Shown here one piece after another: positions 4,480 through 23,288 of a stretch of DNA of 64,000 nucleotides (position 1 is the first letter of the stretch; each line of letters begins with the position of its first letter). The notes under the pieces were generated by a model. That model ran no database searches. It saw only the letters and a list, made by a program, of their open reading frames with translations, and was not told the origin of the DNA. The position numbers were made by a program, and so were the translations under genes. Location: the sequence record OP557969.1, one strand, 5' to 3'.

Positions 4480-4547
4480 GCACCCGGTGGGCTTGAGTCT
4501 TTCTCGACTTGATGGAACTATTATACAGTACTGAAAAAATAAAGCAA
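4480..4547 (-). ncRNA. motif-1 element with own promoter
   Basis: minus-strand TTGCTT-16-TATAAT, then hairpin and CCCACCGGGTGC. Confidence 0.5.
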
Positions 4548-4582
4548 TACCCTGGAAGCAAAAAAATTTTAATTAATTTGCT

Positions 4583-4663
4583 TGCTATTCTGGGCCGTAC
4601 TATGGTACTATTAATTCAGTACTGAGAAAGTGCTTTTACCTGCTAGGGTGCGGGAGTGTATCC
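4583..4663 (+). ncRNA. motif-1 variant with own promoter
   Basis: TTGCTA...TACTAT, then CCTGCTAGGGTGCGGGAGTGTATCC. Confidence 0.45.
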
Positions 4664-4696
4664 TTTTTAAATTTTATGAATTTTGGGCAGATCTCC

Positions 4697-4765
4697 GCAC
4701 CCTGTGGGTTAGTGCCTTGTGTCCGGCTTATGTAGTAATTATACGCTTTTTCAGTACTGAGTCAA
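4697..4765 (-). ncRNA. motif-1 element with own promoter
   Basis: minus-strand TTGACT...TATAAT, then CCCACAGGGTGCGGAG. Confidence 0.5.
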
Positions 4766-5075
4766 TACCTAAAAACAAAATAATTGAAAATAATTTAACG
4801 CGTTTAAACGGCCCGTAAAGCCCTGGAATGATTAGAATGGTGCAAATGTATAGCTTAGGTGTATTAATGCGTTAGAATGCGTCTGAGGCCGTTTTACGGG
4901 GTATAGGGATGATTTAGTGGATTGATTCAGTACTGAATAATAGTACTCCTATATAGAAAGAAAACTATTTTAAAAGTATTTGTAGAAAGTACTTGCACCG
5001 TACTGATAAAAGCGTATAATGTTTTACATCGAGAGCGGGAACACTTCCCGCTACACATTAAGAGAGATTAAAACG

Positions 5076-5438
5076 ATGGCGACTCAAATCAATAAAATTA
5101 TTGCTAACCTGGTTAACTTCCGTGAAGAGATGAAAGGTCTTCCGGCTGAAACGGTAAAAATTCACATTTCAGCTTATCGGGAACTTATTGCAATGTTACC
5201 GCTTAAGCGTGAACAATACGCCGCTACCGTGATGCTTGATGCGATGATCAATAAGATGATCGCCAGTGATTTAACGATGGTTTATCAGTACATGGGCGAA
5301 AATTTCGCGGTGTCTGGTAAGCCAGTACCAGGGATGGCAACTACTGAGGAATTGCACGGTTTAAATTTAAAACAAGATGCATGGGATAATATGCCTCGTT
5401 TCCTGGTATGGGCTGACAGTGGCAAAATTTACAAATAA
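5076..5438 (+). CDS. early hypothetical protein
   Basis: promoter cassette and GAGAG RBS; start moved to MATQINK. Confidence 0.8.
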   Translation: MATQINKIIANLVNFREEMKGLPAETVKIHISAYRELIAMLPLKREQYAATVMLDAMINKMIASDLTMVYQYMGENFAVSGKPVPGMATTEELHGLNLKQDAWDNMPRFLVWADSGKIYK

Positions 5439-5530
5439 GTTTAATAAAGTACTTGCATACTAAGTTAAAACAAGTATAATACTTTCTATCAGGTGGGGAA
5501 TAGTTCCCCACTATATAAGAGGATTAAAAA

Positions 5531-5770
5531 ATGGCTAAATCAAAAATGTTCTTAGGTCACAAAAACAAAACTCATTGGAATGTAAGCCTTTGGATTAATA
5601 ACGATGAATCATTATACCGGTTGGCCCTGGACTTTATTGCCGCCAATACTAATCGCAATGATGCGGCCCGTCATATGATGTTATTTTTAGAACAGACTGG
5701 ACAAGATAAAACACCGGACGGATTCAAATATAGCACTACTGCGATCCGTGCGGCGATGGTTGGAATGTAA
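5531..5770 (+). CDS. early conserved phage protein (HKNKTHWNVSLWINN family), copy 1
   Basis: near-identical N- and C-termini to 7569-7808. Confidence 0.85.
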   Translation: MAKSKMFLGHKNKTHWNVSLWINNDESLYRLALDFIAANTNRNDAARHMMLFLEQTGQDKTPDGFKYSTTAIRAAMVGM

Positions 5771-5860
5771 TAGAATAGAATTTATTTAAAGTACTATCAT
5801 TTTTTGCGATAGTACTTTATAATAGTGTTTTATTCATACACCAACGATAAGGGCAATAGC

Positions 5861-6127
5861 ATGAATATTAAGTATTTTGCGACGCGTGAACAAGCTCGGA
5901 AGGCGGCGAAAGTGGAAGGTGCAACGTTTAAAGATATGGGCATACAATCGGAACGTGGTAAACGTTGGGCCATTGTAAAGCGTAGTACAGCCAGATCATT
6001 ACAGTACTGGTTAGCGGCTTTAAAAAGTCCTGCTAGTGTATCGCGTCGAGTGGTAGAAATAAAGCTCGACCGTAAGGGGAATCGTGTTACCGTGTACCGT
6101 ACTAAAAAGATAGCAGTACTTGAATAA
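5861..6127 (+). CDS. early basic protein, paralog of 18547-18942
   Basis: shared KYFATREQAR..A..EGATFKDMG and DRKGNRVTVY. Confidence 0.75.
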   Translation: MNIKYFATREQARKAAKVEGATFKDMGIQSERGKRWAIVKRSTARSLQYWLAALKSPASVSRRVVEIKLDRKGNRVTVYRTKKIAVLE

Positions 6128-6214
6128 AAAGTACTTGCAAACTATGCTTAAAAGCGTATAATACTTTATATCAGGGCGGGGGAATAGTTCCCGCCTATAA
6201 CCGGGAGTAATAAA

Positions 6215-6445
6215 ATGACTAATATGTATATGACTGAAGTTAAAACCGTAAAAGATACTACCACGAATAAAACTACTTACTTACAGCGGATCTGTGGTGT
6301 CTGGCAACGTATCAGCAAATCAAAGTACTTTAAATTAACATCATATGCCAATCGTTCGGATTCATTCAGTACTGAAATAAAAGGTAATAAAGTACACCAA
6401 TACGGCACTTATTATTATTATAGCCTGGACGCGATTGCAGTATAA
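6215..6445 (+). CDS. early hypothetical protein
   Basis: own promoter cassette and GGAG RBS. Confidence 0.75.
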   Translation: MTNMYMTEVKTVKDTTTNKTTYLQRICGVWQRISKSKYFKLTSYANRSDSFSTEIKGNKVHQYGTYYYYSLDAIAV

Positions 6446-6475
6446 GTAGTTTACAAATCTTTACAATTGCCGGTA

Positions 6476-6555
6476 TTGACTTAAAATGTCAGTACTGGCA
6501 TAATGTATTCATTGGCAGATAAGCCGTGGCCCATAGGGTGCGGAAGTGTATCTAT
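6476..6555 (+). ncRNA. motif-1 element with own promoter
   Basis: TTGACT-17-CATAAT, GGC/GCC hairpin, CCCATAGGGTGCGGAAGTGTATCTA. Confidence 0.5.
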
Positions 6556-6586
6556 AGAAAAATTAGTTTAGTACAGTTACAATTGT

Positions 6587-6648
6587 GCACCCTGTGGGTT
6601 AGCTGTTGTCATGGGGTATATTATGCCAGTACTTGATAATGCTGTCAA
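6587..6648 (-). ncRNA. motif-1 element with own promoter, convergent with 6476
   Basis: minus-strand TTGACA...CATAAT, then CCCACAGGGTGC. Confidence 0.5.
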
Positions 6649-6728
6649 TACTTTTTTACTATTCAGTACTGAAAACTATTTGATAAAAAGTACTTGCAAA
6701 CTATGTTTAAAGGCGTATAATGTTTTAC

Positions 6729-6803
6729 ATCAGGACGGGGAACGAAATAAGTAACTTCCCGTTAAGTAGCCCAGGAGTAAGGCATACGAAAAACTCCCCT
6801 GAT
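6729..6803 (+). ncRNA. motif-2 structured RNA, copy 1
   Basis: starts at promoter +1; ATCAGG/CCTGAT closing stem; GGAGT-AAG-N4-ACGAAAA-ACTCC hairpin; no ORF. Confidence 0.6.
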
Positions 6804-6871
6804 AAAATAGTTTGACAATTGTTTTTAAAAGCGTATAATACTTACATCAACTACTGAATGAGGGTTACAAA

Positions 6872-7483
6872 ATGAAAACTATCACTACTACTACTTATGT
6901 TATGGATTTTTCTGAATTGAACGCAGAACAAAAAACGTCAGCTATCGAACTGGTTCGGGAACGTGAAAAAAACTTAAACGACGATTATTTTTCTGAAAGT
7001 GAAATTGAATACTATAAAGAAACAGTACTACCGGAATATGGCATTAATGACGCAGAAATACAATTCAGTGGTTTTTGGTCGCAAGGTGACGGTGCATCAA
7101 TTAGTACTGACCACGTTGACGCAGTGAAGTTTTTACGTAAGGTAAGAGCATTAACTAAGTATCGCTCAATCCGTCACCTGCTGAATGAAGATGATTTGGC
7201 GATGAGTGTAAAGCGTTCTCACTCCCGCTACTCACATGAGAACACTGTAAGCGGGTACATTGAATCGGCTTACACTGATTTAACCGCAAAACAAGAAACG
7301 TTAGTTAATGAGCTTGAGGAACTGCTCACTGATACTATTCGTGAATTGTCACGCAAGTTATACCGTGATTTAGAGAATGCATATGAGGATCAATTCACTA
7401 CTGAAAACATCGTATCACTGATTGAGGGTAACGAATATCAATTCAATGTTATTGATGGCGTAGTAGAATCAATTGCATATTAA
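6872..7483 (+). CDS. conserved phage/plasmid protein (FSGFWSQGDGA family)
   Basis: 203 aa; motif IQFSGFWSQGDGAS; own promoter. Confidence 0.8.
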   Translation: MKTITTTTYVMDFSELNAEQKTSAIELVREREKNLNDDYFSESEIEYYKETVLPEYGINDAEIQFSGFWSQGDGASISTDHVDAVKFLRKVRALTKYRSIRHLLNEDDLAMSVKRSHSRYSHENTVSGYIESAYTDLTAKQETLVNELEELLTDTIRELSRKLYRDLENAYEDQFTTENIVSLIEGNEYQFNVIDGVVESIAY

Positions 7484-7568
7484 AAAGTACTTGCAAACTA
7501 AGTTTAAAAGCGTATAATACTTTATATCGAGGCGGGGAATGGTTCCCCGCTCAAACGAGGATTTAAAA

Positions 7569-7808
7569 ATGGCTAGTACTAAAACTTACAACGGTCACAA
7601 AAACAAAACTCATTGGAATGTTTCCTTATGGATTAATAACGGTGAGTCATTGTATCGGCTTGCTCAAAGTTGCATCGCACAATGTAAAACTAAAGATATT
7701 GCGGCCCAATGTATGTACCGCAGATTAAAAGCCAACGGTACTACTACAACGCCGGACGGATTCAAGTATAGCACTACGGCGATCCGTGCTGCAATGGTTG
7801 GAATGTAA
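7569..7808 (+). CDS. early conserved phage protein (HKNKTHWNVSLWINN family), copy 2
   Basis: duplicate of 5531-5770; start moved to MASTK. Confidence 0.85.
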   Translation: MASTKTYNGHKNKTHWNVSLWINNGESLYRLAQSCIAQCKTKDIAAQCMYRRLKANGTTTTPDGFKYSTTAIRAAMVGM

Positions 7809-7864
7809 CATTCAGTACTGAATCAATGGCGGGTGTGGTTCCCGCCTTTACTGAGGATTATCTA

Positions 7865-8146
7865 ATGAGTAAAGTAATTAACTATACAGTACTAAGCAAG
7901 TCATTATCTATTAGCCAGTGCACCGATGGTTTTTGGCTGTACGATGAAACGCGTGGTATGAATTTAGCTATGCAGGAGAAAACTCCTGATGCGGCATATC
8001 TTAAAGCACTGGAATACTACCAGAAGCGTTTAACGGAAGTAGAAAACAATTATCAGAATCTCAAAGAGAAAGTAGATAATTTCGTTGGTCAATTCGTTGA
8101 CGATGACGAAGGGCACTACTGCGACCGTTGCGGATCTTACAGTTAA
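7865..8146 (+). CDS. early hypothetical protein with C-terminal CxxC
   Basis: GAGGA RBS; coiled-coil segment; YCDRCG. Confidence 0.75.
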   Translation: MSKVINYTVLSKSLSISQCTDGFWLYDETRGMNLAMQEKTPDAAYLKALEYYQKRLTEVENNYQNLKEKVDNFVGQFVDDDEGHYCDRCGSYS

Positions 8147-8163
8147 GTACTAAGGATTATATA

Positions 8164-8367
8164 ATGAGTGATTTAATTGAACGTATCAAAGAGCTTGAAG
8201 AAAAAGAATTACAGCTAATCGGCTTACAGAATAAAATCTATCATGATTTGGGGAGTTTTATCAATGCTTGGGATAGTGGCGATCCTGATGCGTTACCTGC
8301 TAACCGCCAGGCAATGATCAATGATGTGCGTGGTGTCTTTGAGTATGTTTTAAAGCAATTAAATTAA
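8164..8367 (+). CDS. early hypothetical protein
   Basis: AAGGA RBS; start moved to MSDLIER. Confidence 0.7.
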   Translation: MSDLIERIKELEEKELQLIGLQNKIYHDLGSFINAWDSGDPDALPANRQAMINDVRGVFEYVLKQLN

Positions 8368-8454
8368 AAAAGTACTTGCAATTAGTTTTTAGTACTGTAT
8401 AATGTTTTACATAGAGGGGAGAAAATGGTTCTCCCTAGTAAAGAGGAAAATAAA

Positions 8455-8676
8455 ATGGCTAATATTACTACTCTTTCCCAACTTGAAGCACTGGTTAAAT
8501 CTATGCGGGAACATGCCGACAAAATCGGCGTAAAAGATCCAGCCGTTTGCTTTTGTGACGAATTGAATGATGATACATTGGTAATAGCAGAAGTCCAGGA
8601 CGTTTCTAACTATTCATCGCGTTACACTGGCGGCGTAGCAAATAAAGGTGACTTCTGTTTATACCTTACCAAATAA
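8455..8676 (+). CDS. early hypothetical protein
   Basis: promoter cassette, GAGGA RBS. Confidence 0.75.
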   Translation: MANITTLSQLEALVKSMREHADKIGVKDPAVCFCDELNDDTLVIAEVQDVSNYSSRYTGGVANKGDFCLYLTK

Positions 8677-8677
8677 C

Positions 8678-8710
8678 AACGCGGGGAGATAATAACTCCC
8701 CGTTACTTTT
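8678..8710 (+). terminator. intrinsic terminator
   Basis: CGGGGAG/CTCCCCG stem followed by T-run. Confidence 0.6.
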
Positions 8711-8742
8711 TCAGTACTGAATCATTTAATAGACGGATCTAT

Positions 8743-8812
8743 GCACCCGGTGGGTTAGTGACTGTTTCGTCTTGATGTAGTAATTATGCCAGTACTGGAT
8801 GCGGTTGTCAAG
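8743..8812 (-). ncRNA. motif-1 element with own promoter
   Basis: minus-strand TTGACA...CATAAT, GAC/GTC hairpin, CCCACCGGGTGC. Confidence 0.5.
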
Positions 8813-8924
8813 AACTATTTTTCAAATACTTTTTACTAAAGTACTTGCTAATAGTTTTTAAACGCGTATAATGTTTTACATAGCAAGGGGAAACGGTTTC
8901 CCCTGGTAACTAAGGAATAAGAAA

Positions 8925-9161
8925 ATGATCGAACAAATCAAATCAACGTCTGCGAATGTAACGGGAACGGTATCACACTTTACTAGTGATGAATCGCGGG
9001 GCGTACCCTATTGTGCTGTACATGTAAACACTGAGGGTAACTACTGGTTTACGGTTTACGGATCATATTCATTTGGACGGCCAGGGCATCAAAAAATTCT
9101 GGATAAAGTACAGCCAACGGGTAAAAATATCACTGCTGAAATGTTTTATAAAAAATCATAA
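8925..9161 (+). CDS. early hypothetical protein
   Basis: promoter cassette, AAGGA RBS. Confidence 0.75.
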   Translation: MIEQIKSTSANVTGTVSHFTSDESRGVPYCAVHVNTEGNYWFTVYGSYSFGRPGHQKILDKVQPTGKNITAEMFYKKS

Positions 9162-9245
9162 AGTACTTGATAATAGTTTTTAGTATTGTATAATATTTTA
9201 CATCGCAAGGGGGAGCGGTTCCCCCTGGTAACTAAGGATAATAAA

Positions 9246-9545
9246 ATGAAAATTGCAATCATCGCCCTGGCTTTATCTGTTTCCTCTTTCGCTGTTAATG
9301 CGTCATTAGATGTAAGTAGTGAAAAATTCATTCAGTGCACTGTTGCAATGACCGATGAAAGAACTGGCGAGATTGTATTAAAGGATTTAGAGATCCAGCC
9401 GGAAGCATTTAAAAACGGCCCGTTCCATGAAGAAGACGAAAACGGTAGTACAACAATTTATTATGATGCTAGTACTAAACGCGGTTCGGTCACGGTTATG
9501 GATACTGAGAAAGTAACTCATACAGGCGTTATTAATTGCCGTTGA
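9246..9545 (+). CDS. predicted exported protein with signal peptide
   Basis: MKIAIIALALSVSSFAVNA signal-peptide pattern; two Cys. Confidence 0.75.
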   Translation: MKIAIIALALSVSSFAVNASLDVSSEKFIQCTVAMTDERTGEIVLKDLEIQPEAFKNGPFHEEDENGSTTIYYDASTKRGSVTVMDTEKVTHTGVINCR

Positions 9546-9566
9546 TTGATACTACGGGGTAACATC

Positions 9567-9797
9567 ATGACTAAGCGAATAGTTTTACTTAACGCTGGAA
9601 GTACTACACAACTCCTTAACGCCGTGCATTATGATATTGAAACGAGCGTCAATCTTATCAGTACTGTAGTATTGTTGGACACTGGAAAGGTCGCAAATGA
9701 TAAAGCGATTGCAGGTATACTAACGGATCTTAAACCAGGTTGCAGTACTCCAATAACTTTAAATGATAAAGTGTTTAATATTTTACTAACTGATTAA
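9567..9797 (+). CDS. early hypothetical protein
   Basis: GGGG RBS; ends before terminator. Confidence 0.65.
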   Translation: MTKRIVLLNAGSTTQLLNAVHYDIETSVNLISTVVLLDTGKVANDKAIAGILTDLKPGCSTPITLNDKVFNILLTD

Positions 9798-9803
9798 GTA
9801 CAT

Positions 9804-9825
9804 AGCCCACCAGGTGGGCTTTTTT
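9804..9825 (+). terminator. intrinsic terminator
   Basis: AGCCCAC-CAG-GTGGGCT-TTTTT. Confidence 0.85.
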
Positions 9826-9914
9826 GTTTTTGTAGTATTGTAGTACTGAGATACTTTGAAAATAGTTTTAAAAAAGTAGTTGACATTACCGCAAAAAGGC
9901 GTAGAATGTATTAC

Positions 9915-9987
9915 ATCAAGACGGGGAGCACTAAGTAGACCGCCAGTAAGTCGAACGAAAAACTGGACACGTCGAGAAAACTTTGAT
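9915..9987 (+). ncRNA. motif-2 structured RNA, divergent copy 3
   Basis: ATCAAG/CTTTGAT ends; CCAGT-AAG-N4-ACGAAAA-ACTGG hairpin with compensatory changes. Confidence 0.5.
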
Positions 9988-10030
9988 ACACTAATAAACG
10001 TAAACTAAACTTTAATTGAGGATTTATAAA

Positions 10031-10513
10031 ATGGCGAATGTAAAATCATTTCTGAAAGCACTGATTTCCAACGATACTGCTATTGCGGCTGAACTGCTGG
10101 CGGATCTGGATAACGATACCATGAAAGCAGTACGCAACAATTTTAACATTGCGTACAGTGAAGCTAAAGAACTGCAAGCCAAAAAGGTAGCAGAACTGGA
10201 AGAACAGAAAAAAGCCCGTGAAGAAGAACTACAAGCAACGATTGAAAGTATTCAGGCGGCAGTTGCTGGGTTGGATCTGGATGTAGTTGTAGAAATGGCA
10301 CATAAAGCCCTGGCAGTTAAGTACGGGGAAGATAAGCCAGTAGCTAAACCTAAAAAATGGATTCAGGAACGCGTAACGGTTGTTCTTGATAATGGCGAAG
10401 AACATTTAATTCCCGTGCGTGGTAACTGCATTGCGGTAGTTCTGGATGCTATCAAAGAAAGCGGATTGACTCGCGAGGAATGGATCGAAGCTCACCGCAA
10501 AATTGAAGCATAA
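10031..10513 (+). CDS. H-NS/StpA-like protein lacking the QGR AT-hook
   Basis: coiled-coil N-terminal half; C-terminus DNGEEHLIPVRGNCIAVVLDAIKESGLTREEWI parallels H-NS [34 protein letters not shown]. Confidence 0.55.
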   Translation: MANVKSFLKALISNDTAIAAELLADLDNDTMKAVRNNFNIAYSEAKELQAKKVAELEEQKKAREEELQATIESIQAAVAGLDLDVVVEMAHKALAVKYGEDKPVAKPKKWIQERVTVVLDNGEEHLIPVRGNCIAVVLDAIKESGLTREEWIEAHRKIEA

Positions 10514-10534
10514 CAATTAAAGTACTGAATCACT

Positions 10535-10561
10535 AGCCCACTTCTTATAGTGGGCTTTTTT
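10535..10561 (+). terminator. intrinsic terminator
   Basis: AGCCCACT/AGTGGGCT stem and T-run. Confidence 0.85.
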
Positions 10562-10603
10562 GTGTTTATCGTTTACCAGTCCACTAGCACCGCCTAGAGT
10601 CGA

Positions 10604-10684
10604 TTCTAACGCATTAAACTGATTATCTGATGAATAGCCCTAGCTGGTGGCGTTAATGCCGTTAGAACGCGATTGAGGACGTTT
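10604..10684. repeat. palindromic intergenic element (relatives at 4806-4896, 14953-14977)
   Basis: TTCTAACGCATTAA/TTAATGCCGTTAGAA inverted repeat; shared CGTTAGAA..GC..GAGG.CGTTT arm. Confidence 0.55.
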
Positions 10685-10788
10685 AAAGTATTTTGCAAAA
10701 AGTAATAAAAAGTACTTGCACGATTAAGAGATTAGAGTATAATTAATTACATCAAGACAAGACACCTTAACTAACTGAGGATATAAAG

Positions 10789-10941
10789 ATGAATACTTAT
10801 GAACTGGATTGTTTCACTTTACAAGTAATGTCAGTATGCAGTAAAAAAGATTGGTCATCAAAGGAATTTAAAGCAGTTATTGCGTGTGCAAAACACGGCA
10901 AGACTATCAATGAAACGGCATCAATCATTGATAAACTTTAA
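10789..10941 (+). CDS. small early protein (50 aa), paralog of 14732-14875
   Basis: promoter and GAGGA RBS; C...GK...T..II.K. Confidence 0.7.
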   Translation: MNTYELDCFTLQVMSVCSKKDWSSKEFKAVIACAKHGKTINETASIIDKL

Positions 10942-11012
10942 AAAATAGTTTGACAATAGTTTTAAGTACTGCGATAATACATACATCAACTACTGAATAG
11001 GAATAAAAAACA

Positions 11013-11240
11013 ATGGCTATCGTAATCACTCGCGTAACTGGTACTACTGGCACTGCTTCAACTGTTGCTGTAATTACTAATAAGAAAGGTGCAGAATTAC
11101 ATTTTGCAATGGATAAATGGGCCGTTAATGAGTTTGGTCAGTGGGCAAGTGTAGAATACATTGAAACCTATCAAGTGCCATCGATTAGCTTAACTGATTT
11201 AGGTGTAGAACGTATCCTTTGCCTGGATGAATTAAATTAA
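11013..11240 (+). CDS. early hypothetical protein
   Basis: own promoter, AGGA RBS. Confidence 0.75.
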   Translation: MAIVITRVTGTTGTASTVAVITNKKGAELHFAMDKWAVNEFGQWASVEYIETYQVPSISLTDLGVERILCLDELN

Positions 11241-11326
11241 AAAAGTACTTGCAAAGTAAATCAAATAAAGTATAATACATTACATCAAGGGGAGAAAATG
11301 GTTCTCCCCACTAAGAGGAAACTAAT

Positions 11327-11470
11327 ATGAAAACTTGTCAATGTGGTAAAAAATCTATTACGGGTTTGAAACGGGGCGTTGCACTTTGCCAGTATCATTA
11401 TAATGCTCAAGTATGGGGTAAAGAATGGGCCGACCAGGTGGAAGCAGCAAAGAAAGCAAAAAGTAAGTAA
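11327..11470 (+). CDS. small putative zinc-binding protein (47 aa)
   Basis: promoter cassette, GAGGA RBS; CQC...CQYH. Confidence 0.7.
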   Translation: MKTCQCGKKSITGLKRGVALCQYHYNAQVWGKEWADQVEAAKKAKSK

Positions 11471-11551
11471 AAATATTATCACAGTACTATTGACATAGAT
11501 TGATAGTACTGGCATAATAGATTTTATCAAGACAACTAAGAGGAAATTAAA

Positions 11552-11896
11552 ATGGCTAACATCAATACTATAGCAGCACAAAATATCAACCTGTCTTCTG
11601 TTGAAGTTGTACACATTGCCGCCCGGCGTTGGTTCCAGGCGTCTTATGGTAATACTTATTTCTCTTTAACGGTAGATGTTGAAATCAATGGCGAATTTAT
11701 TGAAGTAGTAAACGTGCCGTTCCAATATGGCTACGGGGATCATTTTGACACTGTAGCAATGGAAGAATTTAGCAAGGTTATTAATATGGAAGGTAAAGAG
11801 TTTTTACGCGGTTCTTATCTTTCCCGTTTTTGCCGTGATAATAATATTACTGTTTATAGTTCTGTTAGTGATGTTAAACGCAAAAAAGATCTTTAA
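11552..11896 (+). CDS. early conserved phage protein, paralog of 18128-18451
   Basis: RW...GNTY.S...F.YGYG...DVKRKKD. Confidence 0.8.
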   Translation: MANINTIAAQNINLSSVEVVHIAARRWFQASYGNTYFSLTVDVEINGEFIEVVNVPFQYGYGDHFDTVAMEEFSKVINMEGKEFLRGSYLSRFCRDNNITVYSSVSDVKRKKDL

Positions 11897-12246: not shown

Positions 12247-12297
12247 TCAAAACAACGTTAGCGGTCGATTTAGGCCGCTTATACTGGGGATTATATA

Positions 12298-15857: not shown

Positions 15858-15936
15858 TACTTGCATTTAGTTTTCAGTACTGTTATAGTACTTGCATCAA
15901 GGGGAAACATCTTCCCCTACTAAGAGGAAATAAAAA

Positions 15937-16125
15937 ATGGAAAACTTATCAAGTATTTTAGTACAAGATGATTTCGGTAATCCTGGAAGTGCTATCATTG
16001 TTCGGGGCAATAAAGCAACGTTTGTTATTGCTGGTGGACCCGTACAGCGTAGCATTAAAAATAATGCTGTTACCATTAATAATGTACGCTATCGCTTAGA
16101 TAAAGAATTAATTCATAAACTGTAA
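15937..16125 (+). CDS. early hypothetical protein
   Basis: promoter cassette, GAGGA RBS. Confidence 0.7.
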   Translation: MENLSSILVQDDFGNPGSAIIVRGNKATFVIAGGPVQRSIKNNAVTINNVRYRLDKELIHKL

Positions 16126-16152
16126 TATTAATTTAATAGAGGATAACAATAA

Positions 16153-16476
16153 ATGTACATTCATACTACTGTCACAAAGGAAGTCCGTTGCCAGTTCGAA
16201 AGTATTCCGGGCGTATGTTTCATCACTGGTACGTTTTCCCCTGGTGATCGTGATAATCCAGTACTGTTACAGTTACGCCATCCATTATGGGATAAAGCAT
16301 TTGATCTGCCGTTGAATGAATTCGCAACCACTGCTGATAAGTACATTAAAAATATTCGCGAGAATGATTGCCTATTCATTAATGCTTTTAGTGATGCCGC
16401 GTTAAGTGAGATCCATGCTGTATTGGTTGCAATCATGGAATCAATGGAGAAAACTATATTCAAACAAGGTGAATAA
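16153..16476 (+). CDS. early hypothetical protein
   Basis: GAGGA RBS. Confidence 0.75.
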   Translation: MYIHTTVTKEVRCQFESIPGVCFITGTFSPGDRDNPVLLQLRHPLWDKAFDLPLNEFATTADKYIKNIRENDCLFINAFSDAALSEIHAVLVAIMESMEKTIFKQGE

Positions 16477-16559
16477 AAACTATTGACAATGCAATCCAGT
16501 ACTGTATAATAGTTTACATGAAGGGGAGAAATGATTCTCCCCACTAAGAGGAAAGAAAA

Positions 16560-16772
16560 ATGCAAGGTCAACTAATCGTTCGTAAATGGTCTGATACTAA
16601 CGAAAAACCGTGGGATGTACAATACATCGCCCCAAATGGTGAATCCAGATATCAACCAGGTGTAACGCATAGTACTGAGCAATTCGCCGCCGCTCATCGC
16701 GAACGTCTGTTACAATCAATGCAGCACGGTTCCGGTGAAAAATTCATTCAGGATCATTGGCTGAAAGATTAA
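16560..16772 (+). CDS. early hypothetical protein
   Basis: promoter cassette, GAGGA RBS. Confidence 0.75.
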   Translation: MQGQLIVRKWSDTNEKPWDVQYIAPNGESRYQPGVTHSTEQFAAAHRERLLQSMQHGSGEKFIQDHWLKD

Positions 16773-16858
16773 AAAGTACTTGCACAGTACTGAATAAAGT
16801 GTATAATGTTTTATATCGGAAGGGGAATAGTTCCCCTCCTAACAAAGAGGAAAGTATA

Positions 16859-17032
16859 ATGGTCCAGGTAGAATTAACAGTACTGAAAGATCTGTTTTAT
16901 CGGATTGGTACTACTGGCGAATATCCGAAGGGTGATAATGCAAAACTTTACGTATCACTCGACTTATGGCAACGCGAACAATTAGCAACGGCCTGGCGTA
17001 AAGGCAAAGCAGATAGCGAGGTGAAAGCATGA
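16859..17032 (+). CDS. small early protein
   Basis: promoter cassette; start moved to MVQVELT. Confidence 0.7.
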   Translation: MVQVELTVLKDLFYRIGTTGEYPKGDNAKLYVSLDLWQREQLATAWRKGKADSEVKA

Positions 17033-17178
17033 AAGAATTCTTATTTGAAGTAGTGTTTCAAGGTGTCGGTAATAACCAACTGATTCGATCAAGTGGTTAT
17101 AATGTTAACCAGGCATGGAATAACATTAAACAAATGTACCCTAACGCTATCACATATCGCAACCCGAAAGAAGTTTAA
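17029..17178 (+). CDS. small early protein (49 aa)
   Basis: GAGG RBS, ATGA coupling; MKEFLFEVVFQG... Confidence 0.65.
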   Translation: MKEFLFEVVFQGVGNNQLIRSSGYNVNQAWNNIKQMYPNAITYRNPKEV

Positions 17179-17188
17179 AAATATTTGA

Positions 17189-17272
17189 AAAAGGGATTGA
17201 CTCCGGTCAGTCCCTTTGCTATTATATACGCATAGAAACAAATCAGCCCACAGGGTGCATAAATGTATCTAT
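17189..17272 (+). ncRNA. terminator/promoter composite followed by motif-1 element
   Basis: AAAGGGATTGAC-TCCG-GTCAGTCCCTTT, TATTAT, then CCCACAGGGTGCATAAATGTATCTA. Confidence 0.5.
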
Positions 17273-17351
17273 TGTTTGCTGGTGGCTAGTACTGAAAACT
17301 ATTTTTAAAAAAGTACTTGCATTGTACTTAGAATCAAGTATAATGTTTTAC

Positions 17352-17424
17352 ATCAGGACGGGGAACGAAATAAGTAACCCCGTTAAGTAGTCCAGGAGTA
17401 AGACATACGAAAAACTCCCCTGAT
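17352..17424 (+). ncRNA. motif-2 structured RNA, copy 2
   Basis: near-identical to 6729-6803, at promoter +1. Confidence 0.6.
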
Positions 17425-17493
17425 AAAATAGTTTGACAATAGAAAGTAAACGAGTATAATACTTACATCAACCACTGATAAGGAAACATTAAA

Positions 17494-17769
17494 ATGCGGA
17501 CTTTACTTACAGCTAACGAAATCGAGCAAGTACTGACTACTAATCTGGAACAATGGAAACGTGAAGCAGATATCCAGGCGGTTCAATGCCTTAACGATAA
17601 GTTAACGCCAGATGACTTAAGCACGATTGTTGATCCACAATTTTATGAAGATATTCACGACACGTCTTTAAGCGTCGAGGATGTACTTGATAAGCACTAC
17701 ATTGATACTGATTTACATGTTTACGGTCGTAAAAACTTTATCACTATTCACGACATTTACAATACTTAA
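17494..17769 (+). CDS. early acidic hypothetical protein
   Basis: promoter, AAGGA RBS. Confidence 0.75.
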   Translation: MRTLLTANEIEQVLTTNLEQWKREADIQAVQCLNDKLTPDDLSTIVDPQFYEDIHDTSLSVEDVLDKHYIDTDLHVYGRKNFITIHDIYNT

Positions 17770-17857
17770 GTATTGACAAAGTATCTTAGTACTGTATAAT
17801 AGTTTACATCAAGTGAGGGGAAACGGTTCCCCTCCTAACAAAGAGAGAGAAATTAAA

Positions 17858-18040
17858 ATGGCTAAGTGCACTATCTGTAAGAAAGAAATCGTATTAGTTC
17901 CAAGTGCCCGTGAACGTGCCGCTCGGTTCGGTGGCAAAGCGTCAGACTATACAAAAATGTTTACTGCCCATGCAGCTTGTCAAGTAGCAAAACGTTCACA
18001 AGAAAGCGTAGAATTAATGCGTAAACTTTCCAAAAAATAA
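17858..18040 (+). CDS. small zinc-binding protein
   Basis: CTIC...HAAC; start moved to MAKC. Confidence 0.75.
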   Translation: MAKCTICKKEIVLVPSARERAARFGGKASDYTKMFTAHAACQVAKRSQESVELMRKLSKK

Positions 18041-18127
18041 GTATTGACAAAGTATCTTAGTACTGTATAATAGTTTACATCAAGCGAGGGGAATGGTTCC
18101 CCTCCTAACAAAGAGAGAGAAATAAAA

Positions 18128-18451
18128 ATGGCTATGATCCTTACCCAGAAAGTAGAACTGAAAATTGTAACCTCCTTTGACATTAAAGTTAATCGGTGGA
18201 CTGATAGCCACGGCAATACTTACCACTCCTGCTACGTGTCCGCATTGATTGGTGATCGCTGGGAAGACCTGGGACACGAAACCTTTACATACGGTTACGG
18301 CACACAAGGCGAGTACACGGGTTTAGAAATCATTAAGGAAACTGTAATAGGTTTCAACCCGAAAGAGAAAGTACTACACAGAATTGAGAAAGAGATCAAC
18401 AAAGAAATTACAGTTCGCTACTACGATGTAAAACGTAAGAAAGACATGTAA
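18128..18451 (+). CDS. paralog of 11552-11896
   Basis: RWTDSHGNTYHS...FTYGYG...DVKRKKDM. Confidence 0.8.
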   Translation: MAMILTQKVELKIVTSFDIKVNRWTDSHGNTYHSCYVSALIGDRWEDLGHETFTYGYGTQGEYTGLEIIKETVIGFNPKEKVLHRIEKEINKEITVRYYDVKRKKDM

Positions 18452-18546
18452 TAGAATCCATTTAAAGTACTATTTGACATTGCCCAGATAGTACTTTATA
18501 ATAGACTCTAACTTGTAGTACTAACTTAACTAATAGGATGTATACC

Positions 18547-18942
18547 ATGATTACTAAATTCTACGCTACCCGTGAAGCTGCCCGTATTGTTGCACGCGAG
18601 GAAGGAGCAGCATTTAAAGACATGGGCAAAGATGCACCGAAAGGTCAACGCTGGGCCGTACAGTTCAAAGAAATCTCTGATATTGTGAATTCACCTGAGC
18701 CAGTACTGACAGCAGCAGAACTAAAACGAGCGGATATGCTGGCGGCAATACTTGACGCACAAGATGAGTTTATCGCTGATTCTGATATCAAAGTACAGGT
18801 AAACCACACCGCATGGACTCACGCGGATCACCTGGCAAACCTTAAGCGTCCAAGTGAACTGATTCGCAACCAGAAAGAGATCCGACATGATCGTAAGGGT
18901 AATCGTGTAACAGTATACAGTAAACGCCGCCAGGTTATCTAA
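18547..18942 (+). CDS. paralog of 5861-6127 with central insertion
   Basis: KFYATREAAR...FKDMG...DRKGNRVTVY. Confidence 0.75.
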   Translation: MITKFYATREAARIVAREEGAAFKDMGKDAPKGQRWAVQFKEISDIVNSPEPVLTAAELKRADMLAAILDAQDEFIADSDIKVQVNHTAWTHADHLANLKRPSELIRNQKEIRHDRKGNRVTVYSKRRQVI

Positions 18943-18964
18943 TAACTTGCAGTACTAACAACAC

Positions 18965-18989
18965 GGCGGGATCAGTTCCCGCCTTTTTT
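18965..18989 (+). terminator. intrinsic terminator
   Basis: GGCGGGA/TCCCGCC stem and T6. Confidence 0.75.
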
Positions 18990-19003
18990 ATAGGACAAAC
19001 AAA

Positions 19004-19258
19004 ATGATTAAGGTTCAACTATATAAAGATAACATCTTACGGGTACACTATAAAGCACCGAAGAGAATCATCACAAAGGCCGTACAGCTTGCTAATGAGT
19101 TTATTAATGGTAACCTATTACCGAGGAAGTTAAGCAACGGGAAACTGCGTGTAATCGATGTGGACACTAACAACAGGATAGTAATCGAGAACACAGGAAA
19201 GATAAACCTTTATGAGCATCAACAATACAATAAGAAAATAAAACTAATATCACGTTGA
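19004..19258 (+). CDS. RelE/ParE-like small protein
   Basis: RKL..G.LRVIDV...RIV...LYEHQQYNK resembles ParE-like phage proteins ending xHExYN. Confidence 0.5.
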   Translation: MIKVQLYKDNILRVHYKAPKRIITKAVQLANEFINGNLLPRKLSNGKLRVIDVDTNNRIVIENTGKINLYEHQQYNKKIKLISR

Positions 19259-19311
19259 CAGTACTCAATTGTTTTAGTATTATGTACACATACCAACACG
19301 GGAGAAACAAA

Positions 19312-19530
19312 ATGAAATTATCTAAAATCGAAAAGAAAACTATTGATGAAGCAGTTAAGCACGGTTATACCTTTCGTAATGATTCACATTTTACCAATTT
19401 TCAACAAGGGTATCGTACTATTAAAAAACTAATTGACAAAGGTTTATTAGTTGAAGTCAATAACGGTAACGGTATCGAGTATCAACCAACACAGGACGCA
19501 TTTTATTTTAAGAAATATAATATTATCTAA
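19312..19530 (+). CDS. small protein, possibly winged-helix
   Basis: TIKKLIDKGLLVEV pattern; start moved to MKLSK. Confidence 0.65.
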   Translation: MKLSKIEKKTIDEAVKHGYTFRNDSHFTNFQQGYRTIKKLIDKGLLVEVNNGNGIEYQPTQDAFYFKKYNII

Positions 19531-19588
19531 TTGACAGTACTCAAATGTTTTAGTACTATATGTACATACCAACACGGGGGGAAACAAA

Positions 19589-19831
19589 ATGATTACTTTA
19601 GAAAAACGTATCAAAGAAACTACATCGCTGGTGGAACTGTTAACAGTACTCAAATGTAAAACAACACCATTCAGCACGCCGGACTTTATTAATATGGTTG
19701 ATGTTAATGGTCGCTATCGTATCACGGTCGAACAAGGAGCGGCGAAAGTATTCAGTACTAAAAACACGAAGGAAGTGATCCACGCCGTTAATGTTAAAAA
19801 AGTAGTTGCCATTGATAGTAAAGTACTGTAA
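19589..19831 (+). CDS. early hypothetical protein
   Basis: leader duplicated from the 19257 cassette. Confidence 0.75.
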   Translation: MITLEKRIKETTSLVELLTVLKCKTTPFSTPDFINMVDVNGRYRITVEQGAAKVFSTKNTKEVIHAVNVKKVVAIDSKVL

Positions 19832-19862: not shown

Positions 19863-20447
19863 ATGCGTAATTATACTAAATTCATCCGTACACTGTCAGA
19901 AATGGAAACCAACAAAGAGATCCTTTCAGCTTGTCGGTTAGCTGGCCTGGAGATCATCGGTGCTGGTTCTTCCCGTATAGTTTTCGCTTTAAATGATCGG
20001 TTAGTGATTAAGGTCGCGAATTGTGATGCGGGTGTAGAACAAAATGAAACTGAATGTAAGGTATGGAATTTTTTAGACTATGACCGCCCTCAATTGAAAC
20101 AGTACTTTGCAAAGGTGCATATGCATTTATGCGATCCTGATAATATGTTTATCGTTATGGATCGGTTGAGTACTGCAAGCAAAGGCAGTGTGAAGCACGT
20201 AAACGCGTGCAATGAATTAAAGTACAATATTAAACGTAATGCAATCGAACGCCAGCACCGCTTTGCTGATGCACTACAACACGTTGATGATACATTATCA
20301 ACACTAACGATAAGAGATATCAGAAAACAGAATATCGGCCAGGATCGTAATGGACTTATTAAAGTACTTGATTACGGTTTAACCAGCAATATCTGGAATC
20401 AGTACTATAAAAAGCGTGATGTGGCAGCAAGTAAGGTAACACGATAA
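19863..20447 (+). CDS. Ser/Thr protein-kinase-like protein
   Basis: GAGSSR Gly loop, VIK lysine, QNETE alphaC Glu, DIRKQN catalytic loop, LDYG (DFG-like). Confidence 0.85.
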   Translation: MRNYTKFIRTLSEMETNKEILSACRLAGLEIIGAGSSRIVFALNDRLVIKVANCDAGVEQNETECKVWNFLDYDRPQLKQYFAKVHMHLCDPDNMFIVMDRLSTASKGSVKHVNACNELKYNIKRNAIERQHRFADALQHVDDTLSTLTIRDIRKQNIGQDRNGLIKVLDYGLTSNIWNQYYKKRDVAASKVTR

Positions 20448-20458
20448 AAAAGATTAAA

Positions 20459-20546
20459 AAAGGGATTGACTCCGGTCAGTCCCTTTGCTATTATATATCC
20501 ATTGAGAGATAACTCACTGACCCATAGGGTGCGGAAGTGTATCTAT
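20459..20546 (+). ncRNA. terminator/promoter composite followed by motif-1 element
   Basis: same hairpin-promoter as 17189; CCCATAGGGTGCGGAAGTGTATCTA. Confidence 0.5.
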
Positions 20547-20667
20547 TATATAAGTATTCAGTACTGAAAACTATTTTTAAAAAAGTACTTGCATTGTACT
20601 TAGAATCAAGTATAATGTTTTATATCGAGAGGGGGAATGGTTCTCCCTGGCAATAAGGAATAAAATC

Positions 20668-20889
20668 ATGACTACAATGACTTGCATTTACGCTTCTAAT
20701 CTTCTGAATGATGCGGCCTTTAATGTTGATTCAGAATATCAATGTTATCGGGATGAAAATAAAAAAGTTTTTGTAGTTGATAATAATGGTTTCCATATTG
20801 AATTACAATCCGGCTTCACTGGTGTTGATGGTAAATCAGTATGGGGCGTACAGGATGATAAAGGCACATATCATTTTAAACGTAATTAA
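20668..20889 (+). CDS. early hypothetical protein
   Basis: promoter cassette, AAGGA RBS. Confidence 0.75.
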   Translation: MTTMTCIYASNLLNDAAFNVDSEYQCYRDENKKVFVVDNNGFHIELQSGFTGVDGKSVWGVQDDKGTYHFKRN

Positions 20890-21377: not shown

Positions 21378-21461
21378 AAGTATTTGACAAAGTATATCAG
21401 TACTGTATAATAGTTTACATCAAGGGGAGAATAGTTCTCCCCACTAAAAGGAAACAAAATT

Positions 21462-21734
21462 ATGTCTAGCTACTCCGCAACTATGATCATCAAAGATATG
21501 AATAACAATCCTACCGCCGCTGGTGGATCGTTCGGTAACATTAACCTAGATGGTCGGTTATCCATGCAATCAGCCATCGATGCAGCGAAAGAAGTTTTTA
21601 AGAATGAATGTACTGTTAGTAAGCTGGATTATATGGGTTTCGCTATCGAGAAAACTACTCGTTTTGTGAACTACAAAAATCCACTGATGATTGATACTAA
21701 CCTGAAAGCTAACGAAGTGGGGTACTTATTATGA
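21462..21734 (+). CDS. early hypothetical protein
   Basis: promoter cassette duplicated from about 20890. Confidence 0.75.
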   Translation: MSSYSATMIIKDMNNNPTAAGGSFGNINLDGRLSMQSAIDAAKEVFKNECTVSKLDYMGFAIEKTTRFVNYKNPLMIDTNLKANEVGYLL

Positions 21735-21922
21735 CAGTAGAAGAAGTTAAAAAAGTACTGGCAGTACTACGATATCATAATCATTGCAAGGTGAAGAATG
21801 ATCCTGATTATCTTGATTCATCCCTGGAGGAAGACACCTTGAACGCTATAAGCCATATGCAGACATTAGCAAAGCGTATGACTGAAAAGAATATGCCGGA
21901 CTATATCGGAAATAAAATTTAA
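21731..21922 (+). CDS. early hypothetical protein
   Basis: ATGA coupling. Confidence 0.7.
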   Translation: MTVEEVKKVLAVLRYHNHCKVKNDPDYLDSSLEEDTLNAISHMQTLAKRMTEKNMPDYIGNKI

Positions 21923-22009
21923 AAAGTACTTGCATTGTAGTTAGATTAACGTATAATGTTTTATATCGAGAGGGGGAAATGGTTTCCCCTCAAGTCCAGG
22001 AGATACACC

Positions 22010-22273
22010 ATGAACACTATCGAAATCACTATCAATGCACACGTATACGACAACGTAGTACTGCAAACTACTATGACCGCCAATGATACCAGTACTTTGC
22101 GGAATACTGTTATTAGTGCCGTATGTGCCGCTATCGGTGATGTCGCCCTGGAAAATGCAAAACACGTAAACGATGGTTTCACTATGTGCAAACGTGATAA
22201 CGCAAAACATATCATCGTGGAAGGTTACGGCGGTGTAGAATTTAATGTTTATATGAAAAAAGTACTTGCATAA
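22010..22273 (+). CDS. early hypothetical protein
   Basis: AGGAG RBS; start moved to MNTIE. Confidence 0.75.
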   Translation: MNTIEITINAHVYDNVVLQTTMTANDTSTLRNTVISAVCAAIGDVALENAKHVNDGFTMCKRDNAKHIIVEGYGGVEFNVYMKKVLA

Positions 22274-22340
22274 TAACTAAAACAAAGTATAATGTTTTGC
22301 ATAGGGGGAGATATCCTCCCCCACTAAAAGGAGTAATAAA

Positions 22341-22565
22341 ATGGCTAACTTTGATGAACTGATGCGGGAAGTAGCTAACCTGGCAGAAGAGAAGAAATCA
22401 TTCGATTCTATCTATAACACCGCTCACCGTGATTCAGTACTGGCATGTAACCAGGATCAAAAAGATGAACTAATCGCCACCTATCATGAAGCATGGAAGT
22501 ACTACCGACAATGGGAGAAAGAAGAAAGTGAGTCTACCATTGACGGCCTCAATAATCTAATCTAA
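22341..22565 (+). CDS. early helical protein
   Basis: promoter cassette, AGGAG RBS. Confidence 0.75.
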   Translation: MANFDELMREVANLAEEKKSFDSIYNTAHRDSVLACNQDQKDELIATYHEAWKYYRQWEKEESESTIDGLNNLI

Positions 22566-22641
22566 AAGTTTTATTTCAGTACTATTGACATAGCTTGATA
22601 GTACTGATGTAATAACTTTACTAACTACAAGGGGAAACATA

Positions 22642-22899
22642 ATGGATCAGTTCACACAATATCGGGTAAATCCACAAGCTATGGCCTACGTAGAAGACCA
22701 TAAAACGTTACCAGTACTGCAACCAGTTAAAGGCCATATCTATCGTGCAATGTCGTGGTGTACGGCCCAGGATGGCTATAAAACCGTAGCCGTGGGTATG
22801 TATTGCGGTGATGGTGAATGGTTTGATCCAAATAATCCGGTAGCCATTGACAGTACTGAAAAAATGAAATGGGCCGACTACATCGAAGATATTTCATAA
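22642..22899 (+). CDS. early hypothetical protein
   Basis: promoter, GGGGA RBS. Confidence 0.75.
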   Translation: MDQFTQYRVNPQAMAYVEDHKTLPVLQPVKGHIYRAMSWCTAQDGYKTVAVGMYCGDGEWFDPNNPVAIDSTEKMKWADYIEDIS

Positions 22900-22989
22900 A
22901 AACTATTTGACAGTACTAACCAGTAATGTATAATGTTTTACATAGAGCGGGGGAATAGTTCTCCCGCCAATAGTTTGGAGTAAAACATT

Positions 22990-23190
22990 ATGTCTATCGC
23001 TATCGCCATGGTTGAAGTACTGAAAGAAGCTAAAGCCAACCAGATCGACGTAAAGATCCAGGAACTACAAAACGGCTTAATCGGCTGTACTTGTACCGCT
23101 GGTGGAGCGGCAGACTATCGAGAACACGAATCACTCGAATCACTGGTTCGGTATCTTACCATGATCGTTGATGATTGGAGAATCATCTAA
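22990..23190 (+). CDS. early hypothetical protein
   Basis: promoter cassette, GGAG RBS. Confidence 0.75.
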   Translation: MSIAIAMVEVLKEAKANQIDVKIQELQNGLIGCTCTAGGAADYREHESLESLVRYLTMIVDDWRII

Positions 23191-23204
23191 CAAAAAAGAA
23201 TAAA

Positions 23205-23288
23205 AAAAGGGATTGACTCCGGTCAGTCCCTTTGCTATTATATACGCATAGACAAAAACTAGCCCACAGGGTGCATAGGTGTATCCAA
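23205..23288 (+). ncRNA. terminator/promoter composite followed by motif-1 element
   Basis: same hairpin-promoter; CCCACAGGGTGCATAGGTGTATCC. Confidence 0.5.

Follow-up and report, generated by a model that had tools for sequence, protein, structure and literature searches.

Several described systems bear comparison with the locus considered here. In T4-type phages, repeated composites of a terminator and an early sigma70 promoter, the PeSL cassettes, are found between small ORFan genes (Arbiol et al. 2010, PMC2839356; Comeau et al. 2014, PMC4122927); and in the Pseudomonas jumbo phage PA5oct, RNA sequencing placed ncRNA001 and ncRNA002 among the most abundant transcripts (PMC7318152). The RaK2-like jumbo phages (Asteriusvirus, Alcyoneusvirus, Mimasvirus and Eneladusvirus) are being isolated for therapy and biocontrol; their 20-kb direct terminal repeats, 20,668 bp in Sharanji (PMC11895373) and annotated at 1–21525 in vB_Ec-M-J, 1–19736 in fENko-Kae01 and 1–22456 in CBB, have a gene content that is nearly all ‘hypothetical’. 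Here we analyse a stretch of 64,000 nucleotides (nt; ‘the window’), positions 1–64000 of Escherichia phage ph0011 (OP557969.1; 348,217 bp; Asteriusvirus, RaK2-like), and describe an element, the ‘module’, of which it holds ten copies: a promoter followed, within the transcribed part, by a variable hairpin and a near-invariant 12-nt core. It is firmly supported that the module is conserved, promoter-coupled, non-coding, under selection at the level of RNA, and confined to the terminal repeat of RaK2-like jumbo phages.

The exact core, CCCANNGGGTGC, is found nine times in the window against an expectation of 0.01, a count reached by none of 100 shuffles; the positions and strands reported for these copies in an initial annotation of the sequence are confirmed (+ strand: 6530, 13523, 17247, 20521 and 23263; − strand: 4480, 4697, 6587 and 8743; Table 1). 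The same annotation placed a variant copy on the + strand at 4639–4651: the copy is real, its core (CTGCTAGGGTGC) being better set at 4640–4651, anchored on the GGGTGC at 4646–4651, whilst the ‘compensatory’ CCT/AGG change ascribed to it is a single case that requires a one-base shift in alignment, and is no evidence of covariation. Each copy does have its own sigma70 promoter in the same orientation, as had been proposed (TTGAC(A/T), a spacer of 16–18 nt, then TATAAT, TATTAT or TG-n-CATAAT), with the −10 hexamer ending 21–29 nt 5′ of the core in all window copies; a promoter ending at this distance is seen for 70 of the 72 copies, drawn from eight genomes or contigs and each with 150 nt of downstream sequence, that make up our survey of context. 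The variable 5′ hairpins and, in the + copies, the RTGTATCY continuation are likewise present.

No coding sequence (CDS) annotated in GenBank overlaps any of the ten copies, which lie in the gene gaps 3082–5076, 6445–6872, 8676–8925, 13234–13679, 17178–17494, 20447–20668 and 23190–23436. A coding explanation was rejected: no ph0011 CDS lies on the elements, and the three mechanical open reading frames (ORFs) that run over them have no PHROG. The earlier statement that no ribosome-binding site or ORF follows stands for the element itself and for the six left-hand copies, but not for those at 13523, 17247, 20521 and 23263, where a second promoter lies within ~60–80 nt and a gene starts 135–235 nt past the core.

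Window 4000–9000 is 100% identical to ph0011 positions 4000–9000, and shares 90–93% identity with RaK2-like jumbo coliphages that include G17, Sharanji and SP27. When the vB_Ec-M-J repeat is aligned, its first base falls at window 3359 and its final base at ~24689, and the G+C content between these points is 38%, versus 31–33% outside; for both reasons we take 3359–24689 to be the putative terminal repeat of ph0011. All ten copies of the module fall within it.

The relatives present the same picture. In Pectobacterium phage CBB all 11 copies are within the annotated 22.5-kb repeat, and Klebsiella phage RaK2 has eight exact 12-mers and one variant within 17 kb. The covariance-model search of relatives called for in the initial annotation, made with a sequence-only model built from 28 copies, returned 91 matches in ph0011, CBB, RaK2, GAP32, Salmonella phage PHA46, 121Q and metagenomic jumbo contigs, with 33 further matches in additional IMG/VR loci, including Serratia phage BF; distinct copies number ~96 in at least ten RaK2-like genomes, at 8–12 per terminal repeat, and the core reads CCCAYNGGGTGC in >90 of them. 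A real family, as first suspected, is thus borne out. With one element as BLAST query, every match was to a jumbo phage, the hosts being Escherichia, Klebsiella, Salmonella, Erwinia, Pectobacterium, Cronobacter and Serratia. Pattern scans of whole IMG/VR contigs gave, for each jumbo genome, matches within a single stretch of ~20 kb, or at the two ends in records that include the repeat twice. The remainder of the window, the final 50 kb of ph0011 and, in an Erwinia relative, 24 kb outside the repeat gave no match.

Some pattern matches were rejected as carriers of the module. In the GC-rich IMG/VR contigs L018 (14740–14950) and L022, from unrelated high-GC phage, iterated TGACCCACTGGGTGCA repeats happen to include the same 12-mer; these are unrelated, and probably represent an iteron or operator array. 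The match in contig L013 is an unrelated hairpin, and single matches to a 14-base pattern in small contigs are mostly due to chance and fail the covariance model.

Working from the 5′ end, the transcribed part of the module comprises a hairpin (H1), a YUAR linker, a second hairpin (P1; R-CCC-(3–4 nt)-GGG-U) and an alternative helix (H2). A conserved CAU lies ~7 nt past the −10 element, and its A is the putative transcript start. H1 is a hairpin of 3–5 bp that ends 4–5 nt 5′ of the core and is present in ~82 of 96 copies; it has >20 different stems and conserved, A-rich loops of 6–8 nt (AGAACAA, AGAUAA, GCGAAA, GAGAAA), the copies without a stem retaining an A-rich stretch. ‘Variable 5′ arm, constant handle’, the wording first used for this layout, is therefore a fair description.

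Covariation across relatives, put forward earlier as a check, is present and is located in H1. It was scored over 36 copies in one register, pre-selected for at least three of four pairs, which makes the percentage of paired cells circular but not the compensation: double-sided changes occur at all four stem pairs (73 cells), giving a covariation score of 0.652 compared with 0.278 in shuffles, none of 500 of which reached the real value; sliding the partner strand by 1–3 columns lowers the score to 0.09–0.17. A statistic based on the longest stem of H1 failed to tell real sequences from shuffled ones, and was replaced by the register-specific covariation count. G.U and U.G pairs occur in H1, and G.U pairs in H2 as well; such pairs make sense only on the transcribed strand.

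P1, R-CCC-(AYN)-GGG-U, is 98% paired and closed by an A-U or G.U pair; about ten copies have a loop of 4 nt, not 3 (e.g. UAGA, UAUA, UCAA, AAAA, AUUA). In H2 the GGGUG of the core pairs with a YRYCY run after a fixed gap of 7 nt (the core C plus six loop bases), 89–92% of cells being paired in this register versus 25–69% in others. The partner columns opposite G5, U4 and G2 are pyrimidine (93/93), purine (93/93) and pyrimidine (93/93), respectively, with a minor allele at 14–30%, and all four bases occur in the loop columns. The sole two substitutions within GGGUG (GGAUGC and GGGUAC) convert G.U to A-U pairs and, because three of the five consensus pairs are G.U, H2 is possible only in RNA of the transcribed strand. 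RNAalifold, given ten terminator-type copies (see below), recovered P1 plus the terminator. In our reading, the core either switches between two states, or forms only one of the two helices, the other reflecting a constraint on sequence.

Three contexts recur among the 72 surveyed copies. In ~9–13, a GC-rich stem with a U-run lies ~40 nt past the core, in most cases shared with the preceding + gene as a bidirectional terminator, and the predicted RNAs are of 85–100 nt. Such a U-tailed intrinsic terminator, a trait of Hfq-type trans-acting small RNAs, is absent from the other copies. The 8743 copy is of this kind, sharing the terminator at 8702–8682 with the + gene 8425–8676, and is predicted to be a stand-alone small-RNA gene with an RNA of ~100 nt; many of the copies are likely to be stand-alone small-RNA genes. 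A further 26 copies belong to convergent pairs, two modules that face each other and form an inverted repeat of 12–16 bp. The two cores are most often offset by 57 nt: ph0011 has two such pairs (4640/4697 and 6530/6587), CBB has three, and further genomes have them too. Where a pair is longer, the second core starts 56–68 nt past the end of the first, and several of these longer pairs enclose a central AT-flanked hairpin. The remaining type, ‘leader’, also has 26 members: module, A/T-rich UP-like element, TTGCAA-16-TATAAT promoter, then gene. The four right-hand + copies of the window are leaders, each with its own −35 inside a 12-bp stem that has a UCCG or UUCG loop and a U-run.

How might such a module act? 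We would put at about even the chance that the copies form a family, so far undescribed, of small RNAs or leaders made in abundance in the immediate-early phase, coupled to their promoters and specific to the terminal repeat, with the core as a protein-binding ‘handle’. Host sigma70 RNA polymerase would fire at the near-consensus promoter once the terminal repeat enters the cell, and the transcript, beginning at the A of the CAU, would fold its 5′-terminal H1, whose variable stem of 3–5 bp, supported by covariation, probably shields the 5′ end. Past the YUAR linker it would present the near-invariant P1 (R-CCC-(3–4 nt loop)-GGG-U-GC), the GGGUG of which may instead form H2. With its own terminator or a convergent twin the module would yield a short RNA of ~60–110 nt; with a gene downstream, a 5′ leader ahead of that gene's own promoter. 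The invariant hairpin would then be the handle for a conserved protein, a host factor being more likely than a phage factor, and 8–12 copies, doubled by the repeat, would flood the cell with it in the first minutes as a decoy or regulator in host takeover.

A protein-binding handle is suggested because the 12-mer is frozen across phages of six host genera whilst stems, loops, promoters and neighbours drift; phages sharing it have only about a third of their proteins in common (PMC5259590). Changes in the sequence and length of the core loop are tolerated, unlike in an antisense seed. High copy number, strong promoters and a first-entering location in turn suggest the role of decoy or regulator. 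More tentatively, up to ~twenty gene copies per injected genome could make the invariant hairpin a high-copy decoy that titrates or re-programmes a conserved enterobacterial protein in the first minutes, the candidates being RNA chaperones, ribonucleases, RNA-sensing defence proteins and RNA polymerase itself; an alternative to a decoy would be nut-like processive antitermination of a new sequence class, in a phage of the T4 superfamily.

The sponge or decoy had been among the roles initially suggested, and is compatible with the data. Two others fare less well. A guide RNA is unlikely, since the variable arm is not free sequence, being a hairpin with a conserved A-rich loop, and has no complementary targets in the window; complements of the core are found in the window only at the partner copies. 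As to RNA anti-CRISPRs, which are solitary mimics of a CRISPR repeat, the enterobacterial type I-E and I-F repeats are not known to resemble the core. A DNA hairpin acting as injection signal has nothing in its favour except location in the terminal repeat.

Several points weigh against a family of protein-binding early RNAs. Neither P1 nor H2 shows double-sided covariation, the 5′ strand of the core being invariant; the two share the GGG and are mutually exclusive, so that at least one may be a sequence constraint and not a pairing; and columns restricted to purines or pyrimidines are no proof of pairing, as one unpaired loop column is also purine-only. About a third of the copies lack a terminator and lead on into a second promoter with its gene, which fits a leader in cis at least as well as an RNA in trans; these leader-type copies may be just that, rather than stand-alone small RNAs. 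Pfam searches with 40 repeat proteins gave no domain of RNA-binding, NusG/KOW, Hfq, CsrA or ProQ type. The start sites and 3′ ends of the module RNAs are themselves inferred from sequence, and the decoy function is pure inference.

Control of elongation in cis, which we consider unlikely, would have the nascent RNA of H1 and core, or the core in the non-template strand, modify host RNA polymerase either alone (as HK022 put does) or through a recruited factor (lambda nut/N, ops/RfaH); pausing or terminator read-through, hence an immediate-early to delayed-early switch, would be the outcome. The geometry suits this: the module is always within ~15–25 nt of the transcript start and always sense, it has a nut-like build (a variable-stem hairpin with a conserved purine-rich loop beside an invariant short sequence), and invariance across host genera is what a polymerase or Nus-factor target would show. 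The early region is also rich in predicted intrinsic terminators, and the third or so of copies that precede genes with an additional, element-free promoter would give two classes of transcript. Read-through would, however, be useless to copies with a terminator 40 nt on and to convergent pairs, both of which would then give RNA antisense to upstream genes, and is not obviously needed where repeat genes have their own promoters every few hundred bases. Nor does the module contain a boxA-like or ops-like sequence or match Rfam, and the repeat proteins scanned include no NusG-like domain and no N-like arginine-rich protein, the N-terminal motif of the latter being absent from all 58 annotated proteins of window 52–24537.

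We give little credence to a DNA operator, that is, a double-stranded 12-mer bound by a phage or host protein that acts as roadblock or repressor to shut off early transcription. An exact 12-mer that is unchanged in many copies and genera, always promoter-proximal and partly palindromic (CCC-N3-GGG) is what a multi-copy protein site might look like, but insertion of one base between CCC and GGG is tolerated in the ten or so copies with the longer loop, and a hairpin therefore fits better than a linear double-stranded site. The distance to the −10 varies over 21–29 nt, orientation to the promoter is strictly fixed, and the pattern of the flanks (H1 covariation, a wobble-compatible H2 partner, G.U pairs) is strand-specific in a way that suits RNA.

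Similarly improbable is a mobile promoter–terminator cassette or insulator of PeSL type, shuffling small early genes and stopping read-through by collision or a long hairpin, with an RNA that has no role in trans. The stem over the −35 of the four right-hand + copies, 12 bp with a UCCG/UUCG loop and U-run, has the layout of a PeSL composite (PMC4122927, PMC2839356); modules lie between small ORFan genes, minus-strand copies sit just 3′ of + terminators, and the inverted repeat made by a pair would serve as the long hairpin. Function as a promoter or terminator, however, does not call for a 12-mer that never changes, or for a 5′ hairpin that covaries, in the transcribed part; the −35 lies under a stem-loop in only some copies, and no U-run follows the hairpin of the pairs.

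T4 origins are not known to share a conserved motif such as this, which counts against R-loop replication origins of the oriF/oriG type. These, where a promoter transcript hybridised in an A+T-rich unwinding region primes the leading strand, are highly improbable, even granted membership of the T4 superfamily with a T4-like replisome (PMC5259590) and a module that is made up of promoter, G-rich RNA segment and then A+T-rich DNA: convergent pairs would send forks at each other, several copies terminate after 40 nt, and 8–12 origins in 20 kb are implausible.

Returning to the window, Table 1 collects the coordinates of the ten copies and of the features that surround them.

Table 1. Module copies, putative terminal repeat and Chi sites of the window (copies are named by the first base of the core; −35 and −10, promoter elements)
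Feature	Position	Strand	Promoter	H1 stem	Core	H2 partner	Remarks
Copy 4480	4468–4547	−	−35 4542–4547, −10 4520–4525	AGUC/GACU	4480–4491, CCCACCGGGTGC	ACGCCC	
Variant copy 4640	4582–4663	+	weaker, TTGCTA-18-TACTAT	AGUACU/AGUGCU	4640–4651, CTGCTAGGGTGC	GTATCC	
Copy 4697	4685–4765	−	4765–4738	GCC/GGC	4697–4708	CTGCCC	convergent with 4640, offset 57
Copy 6530	6476–6553	+	6476–6504 (TG-extended CATAAT)	GGC/GCC	6530–6541	GTATCT	convergent with 6587, offset 57
Copy 6587	6575–6648	−	6648–6620	none (A-rich 5′ end)	6587–6598	GTAACT	
Copy 8743	8672–8811	−	8811–8783; putative start ~8776	GAC/GUC	8743–8754	CCGTCT	intrinsic terminator 8702–8682
Copy 13523	13461–13546	+	−10 TATTAT ends 13496	UGAG/CUCA	13523–13534	GTATCT	terminator-like hairpin over −35 (13461–13488)
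Copy 17247	17190–17270	+		none	17247–17258	GTATCT	12-bp hairpin over −35 (17190–17217)
Copy 20521	20459–20544	+		UGAG/CUCA	20521–20532	GTATCT	12-bp hairpin over −35 (20459–20486)
Copy 23263	23206–23286	+		none	23263–23274	GTATCC	12-bp hairpin over −35 (23206–23233)
Putative direct terminal repeat	3359–24689						homology to annotated repeat 1–21525 of vB_Ec-M-J; ~21.3 kb
Chi sites	3966, 3978, 10643, 14898, 16030, 17278, 19627, 21519, 23098, 23321; also 61654	−, +, +, +, +, +, +, +, +, +; −					sequence match

The outermost copies lie towards the two edges of the putative repeat, that at 4480 pointing toward its left physical end and that at 23263 being ~1.4 kb from its right edge. Downstream of the leader-type copies we find, for 13523, the second promoter at 13601–13628 and gene 13679–14020; for 17247, a Chi site at 17278, a second promoter and gene 17494–17769; for 20521, a second promoter and gene 20668–20889; and for 23263, a Chi site at 23321, a promoter at 23354–23382 and gene 23436–23768. 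The repeat is dense in tiny + strand genes, with many perfect TTGACA-16-TATAAT promoters (~ten between 14 and 23 kb). No tRNA or tmRNA was found in the window.

The second promoter class, TTGCAA-16-TATAAT with the A/T-rich UP-like element AAAACTATTTTTAAAAAAGTAC upstream, is found at 13601–13628, 11249–11276, 12776–12803, 13004–13031, 6135–6162 and elsewhere. Its transcripts are also predicted to open with CAU and then a hairpin, and 5′-terminal hairpins thus seem to be general to early transcripts here.

The palindrome CAGTACTG occurs 60 times in the 64 kb (e.g. at 3767, 3911, 3937, 4526, 4617, 4752, 6490 and 8790), and AGTACTG >110 times per strand. The palindrome is often located in the promoter spacer just 5′ of the −10, where it provides the TG of an extended −10, and often again ~25 nt 3′ of the RNA module, as AGTACTGAAAA.

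The left edge of the repeat lies within a 2-kb stretch without ORFs (3082–5076). Found in this stretch are direct repeats of ATTGTTAAAATTCAGCCTG at ~3100 and ~3131, just beyond the boundary, a run of iteron-like GGCTAGA/GGCTAAAC repeats at ~4185–4295, and degenerate remnants of the RNA module at ~4102–4165; these repeats and remnants are possible packaging or replication signals. Escherichia coli Chi, GCTGGTGG, is present 11 times in the window versus 0.49 expected, ten of these inside the putative repeat and nine of the ten on the + strand. The + sites face so as to stop RecBCD coming from the right end, whilst that at 3966, ~600 nt from the left end, would stop RecBCD coming from the left: a layout that looks like end protection of a linear genome.

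Domains were recognised in the repeat proteins encoded at 15179–15436, 15501–15857, 19004–19258 and 19863–20447: a DksA/TraR C4 zinc finger, whose protein is likely to be a binder of the RNA polymerase secondary channel, a GNAT acetyltransferase, a ParE-like toxin domain and a weak protein-kinase match. The proteins of 5861–6127 and 18547–18942 have in common a basic C-terminal motif, EI(K/R)xDRKGNRVTVY. The first of these, of 88 amino acids with a net charge of +15 and no relative in Pfam or the PDB, is a possible nucleic-acid binder; its gene is ~400 nt upstream of the 6530/6587 pair.

In relatives, short CDSs have been annotated directly over convergent pairs: 3793–3966 of L007 (CBB gp007), and several of <50 amino acids in L026 (PHA46). 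These are probably annotation artefacts. CBB gp007 does match a PHROG from end to end, a family that was presumably built from that same short CDS, and the match gives no independent support for the gene.

The module is the most conserved sequence of the terminal repeat, outliving the surrounding genes across at least six host genera. It predicts ~ten discrete, very abundant early RNAs, its 12-nt hairpin can be used directly as bait for a partner and, should that partner be a host factor, would provide a new example of RNA-based host takeover. The covariance model is ready for use in annotating new genomes, where spurious short CDSs are now called over some copies.

Turning to described families, the Rfam 15 covariance models (gathering score, or E ≤ 1), a comparison suggested at the outset, gave no gathering-level match in the 64-kb window, and at E ≤ 1 only two chance-level matches in 3000–25000, neither on the element. 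A literature search for the exact 12-mer returned only unrelated papers, none of those searchable having it in a phage context, and the motif is not described in the genome papers of CBB, Sharanji and PA5oct or in a 2026 review of jumbo phages. The PA5oct RNAs are the nearest precedent from experiment, and resemble the modules in being ORF-less and in coming from a related jumbo phage, where they lie in the long direct terminal repeat (PMC7318152), but at 236 and 451 nt they are single-copy and were annotated without a known promoter, whereas modules are multi-copy and have promoters; as homologues they were rejected, with a best model score of 4.3 bits (filters off) and no similarity in sequence or motif. 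The ops/RfaH element is likewise 12 nt long, orientation-specific, near-invariant in 5′ leaders, Enterobacterales-wide and able to form a tiny hairpin; its consensus, GGCGGTAGnnTG, is unrelated to the core, and the modules are many, some without an operon downstream.

Similar in build are lambda nut (boxA plus boxB) and HK022 put, promoter-proximal RNAs of early transcripts in which a small hairpin with purine-rich loop and variable stem adjoins a conserved sequence. Lambda nut has a boxA (CGCUCUUA-like), whereas the modules have none and all copies carry YUAR-CCCAYNGGGUGC beside H1; it has a GNRA-like pentaloop and two copies, compared with loops of 6–8 nt and 8–12 copies on both strands. No N-like protein was found among the scanned proteins of the repeat, and several modules lie directly before a terminator or a convergent twin.

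Similar in setting are the PeSLs with which we began, also repeated between small ORFan genes of T4-superfamily phages; the nt-1 phage pair stem, A3-4G3-loop-C3T3-4, is like the AAAGGG...CCCTTT of the ph0011 modules. A PeSL-type stem-loop and promoter is seen at 13461–13496, 17190–17225, 20459–20494 and 23206–23241, and in many + copies of relatives, but not in the six left-hand copies; in most module copies the −35 is free of a stem-loop, and the family does not extend beyond the terminal repeat. PeSLs as published have no conserved transcribed RNA module, whereas here the defining part (H1, core and H2) lies 3′ of the start. Early promoter cassettes and non-coding RNAs are each known from phages; a module that combines many copies, confinement to the repeat and an invariant hairpin core appears undescribed.

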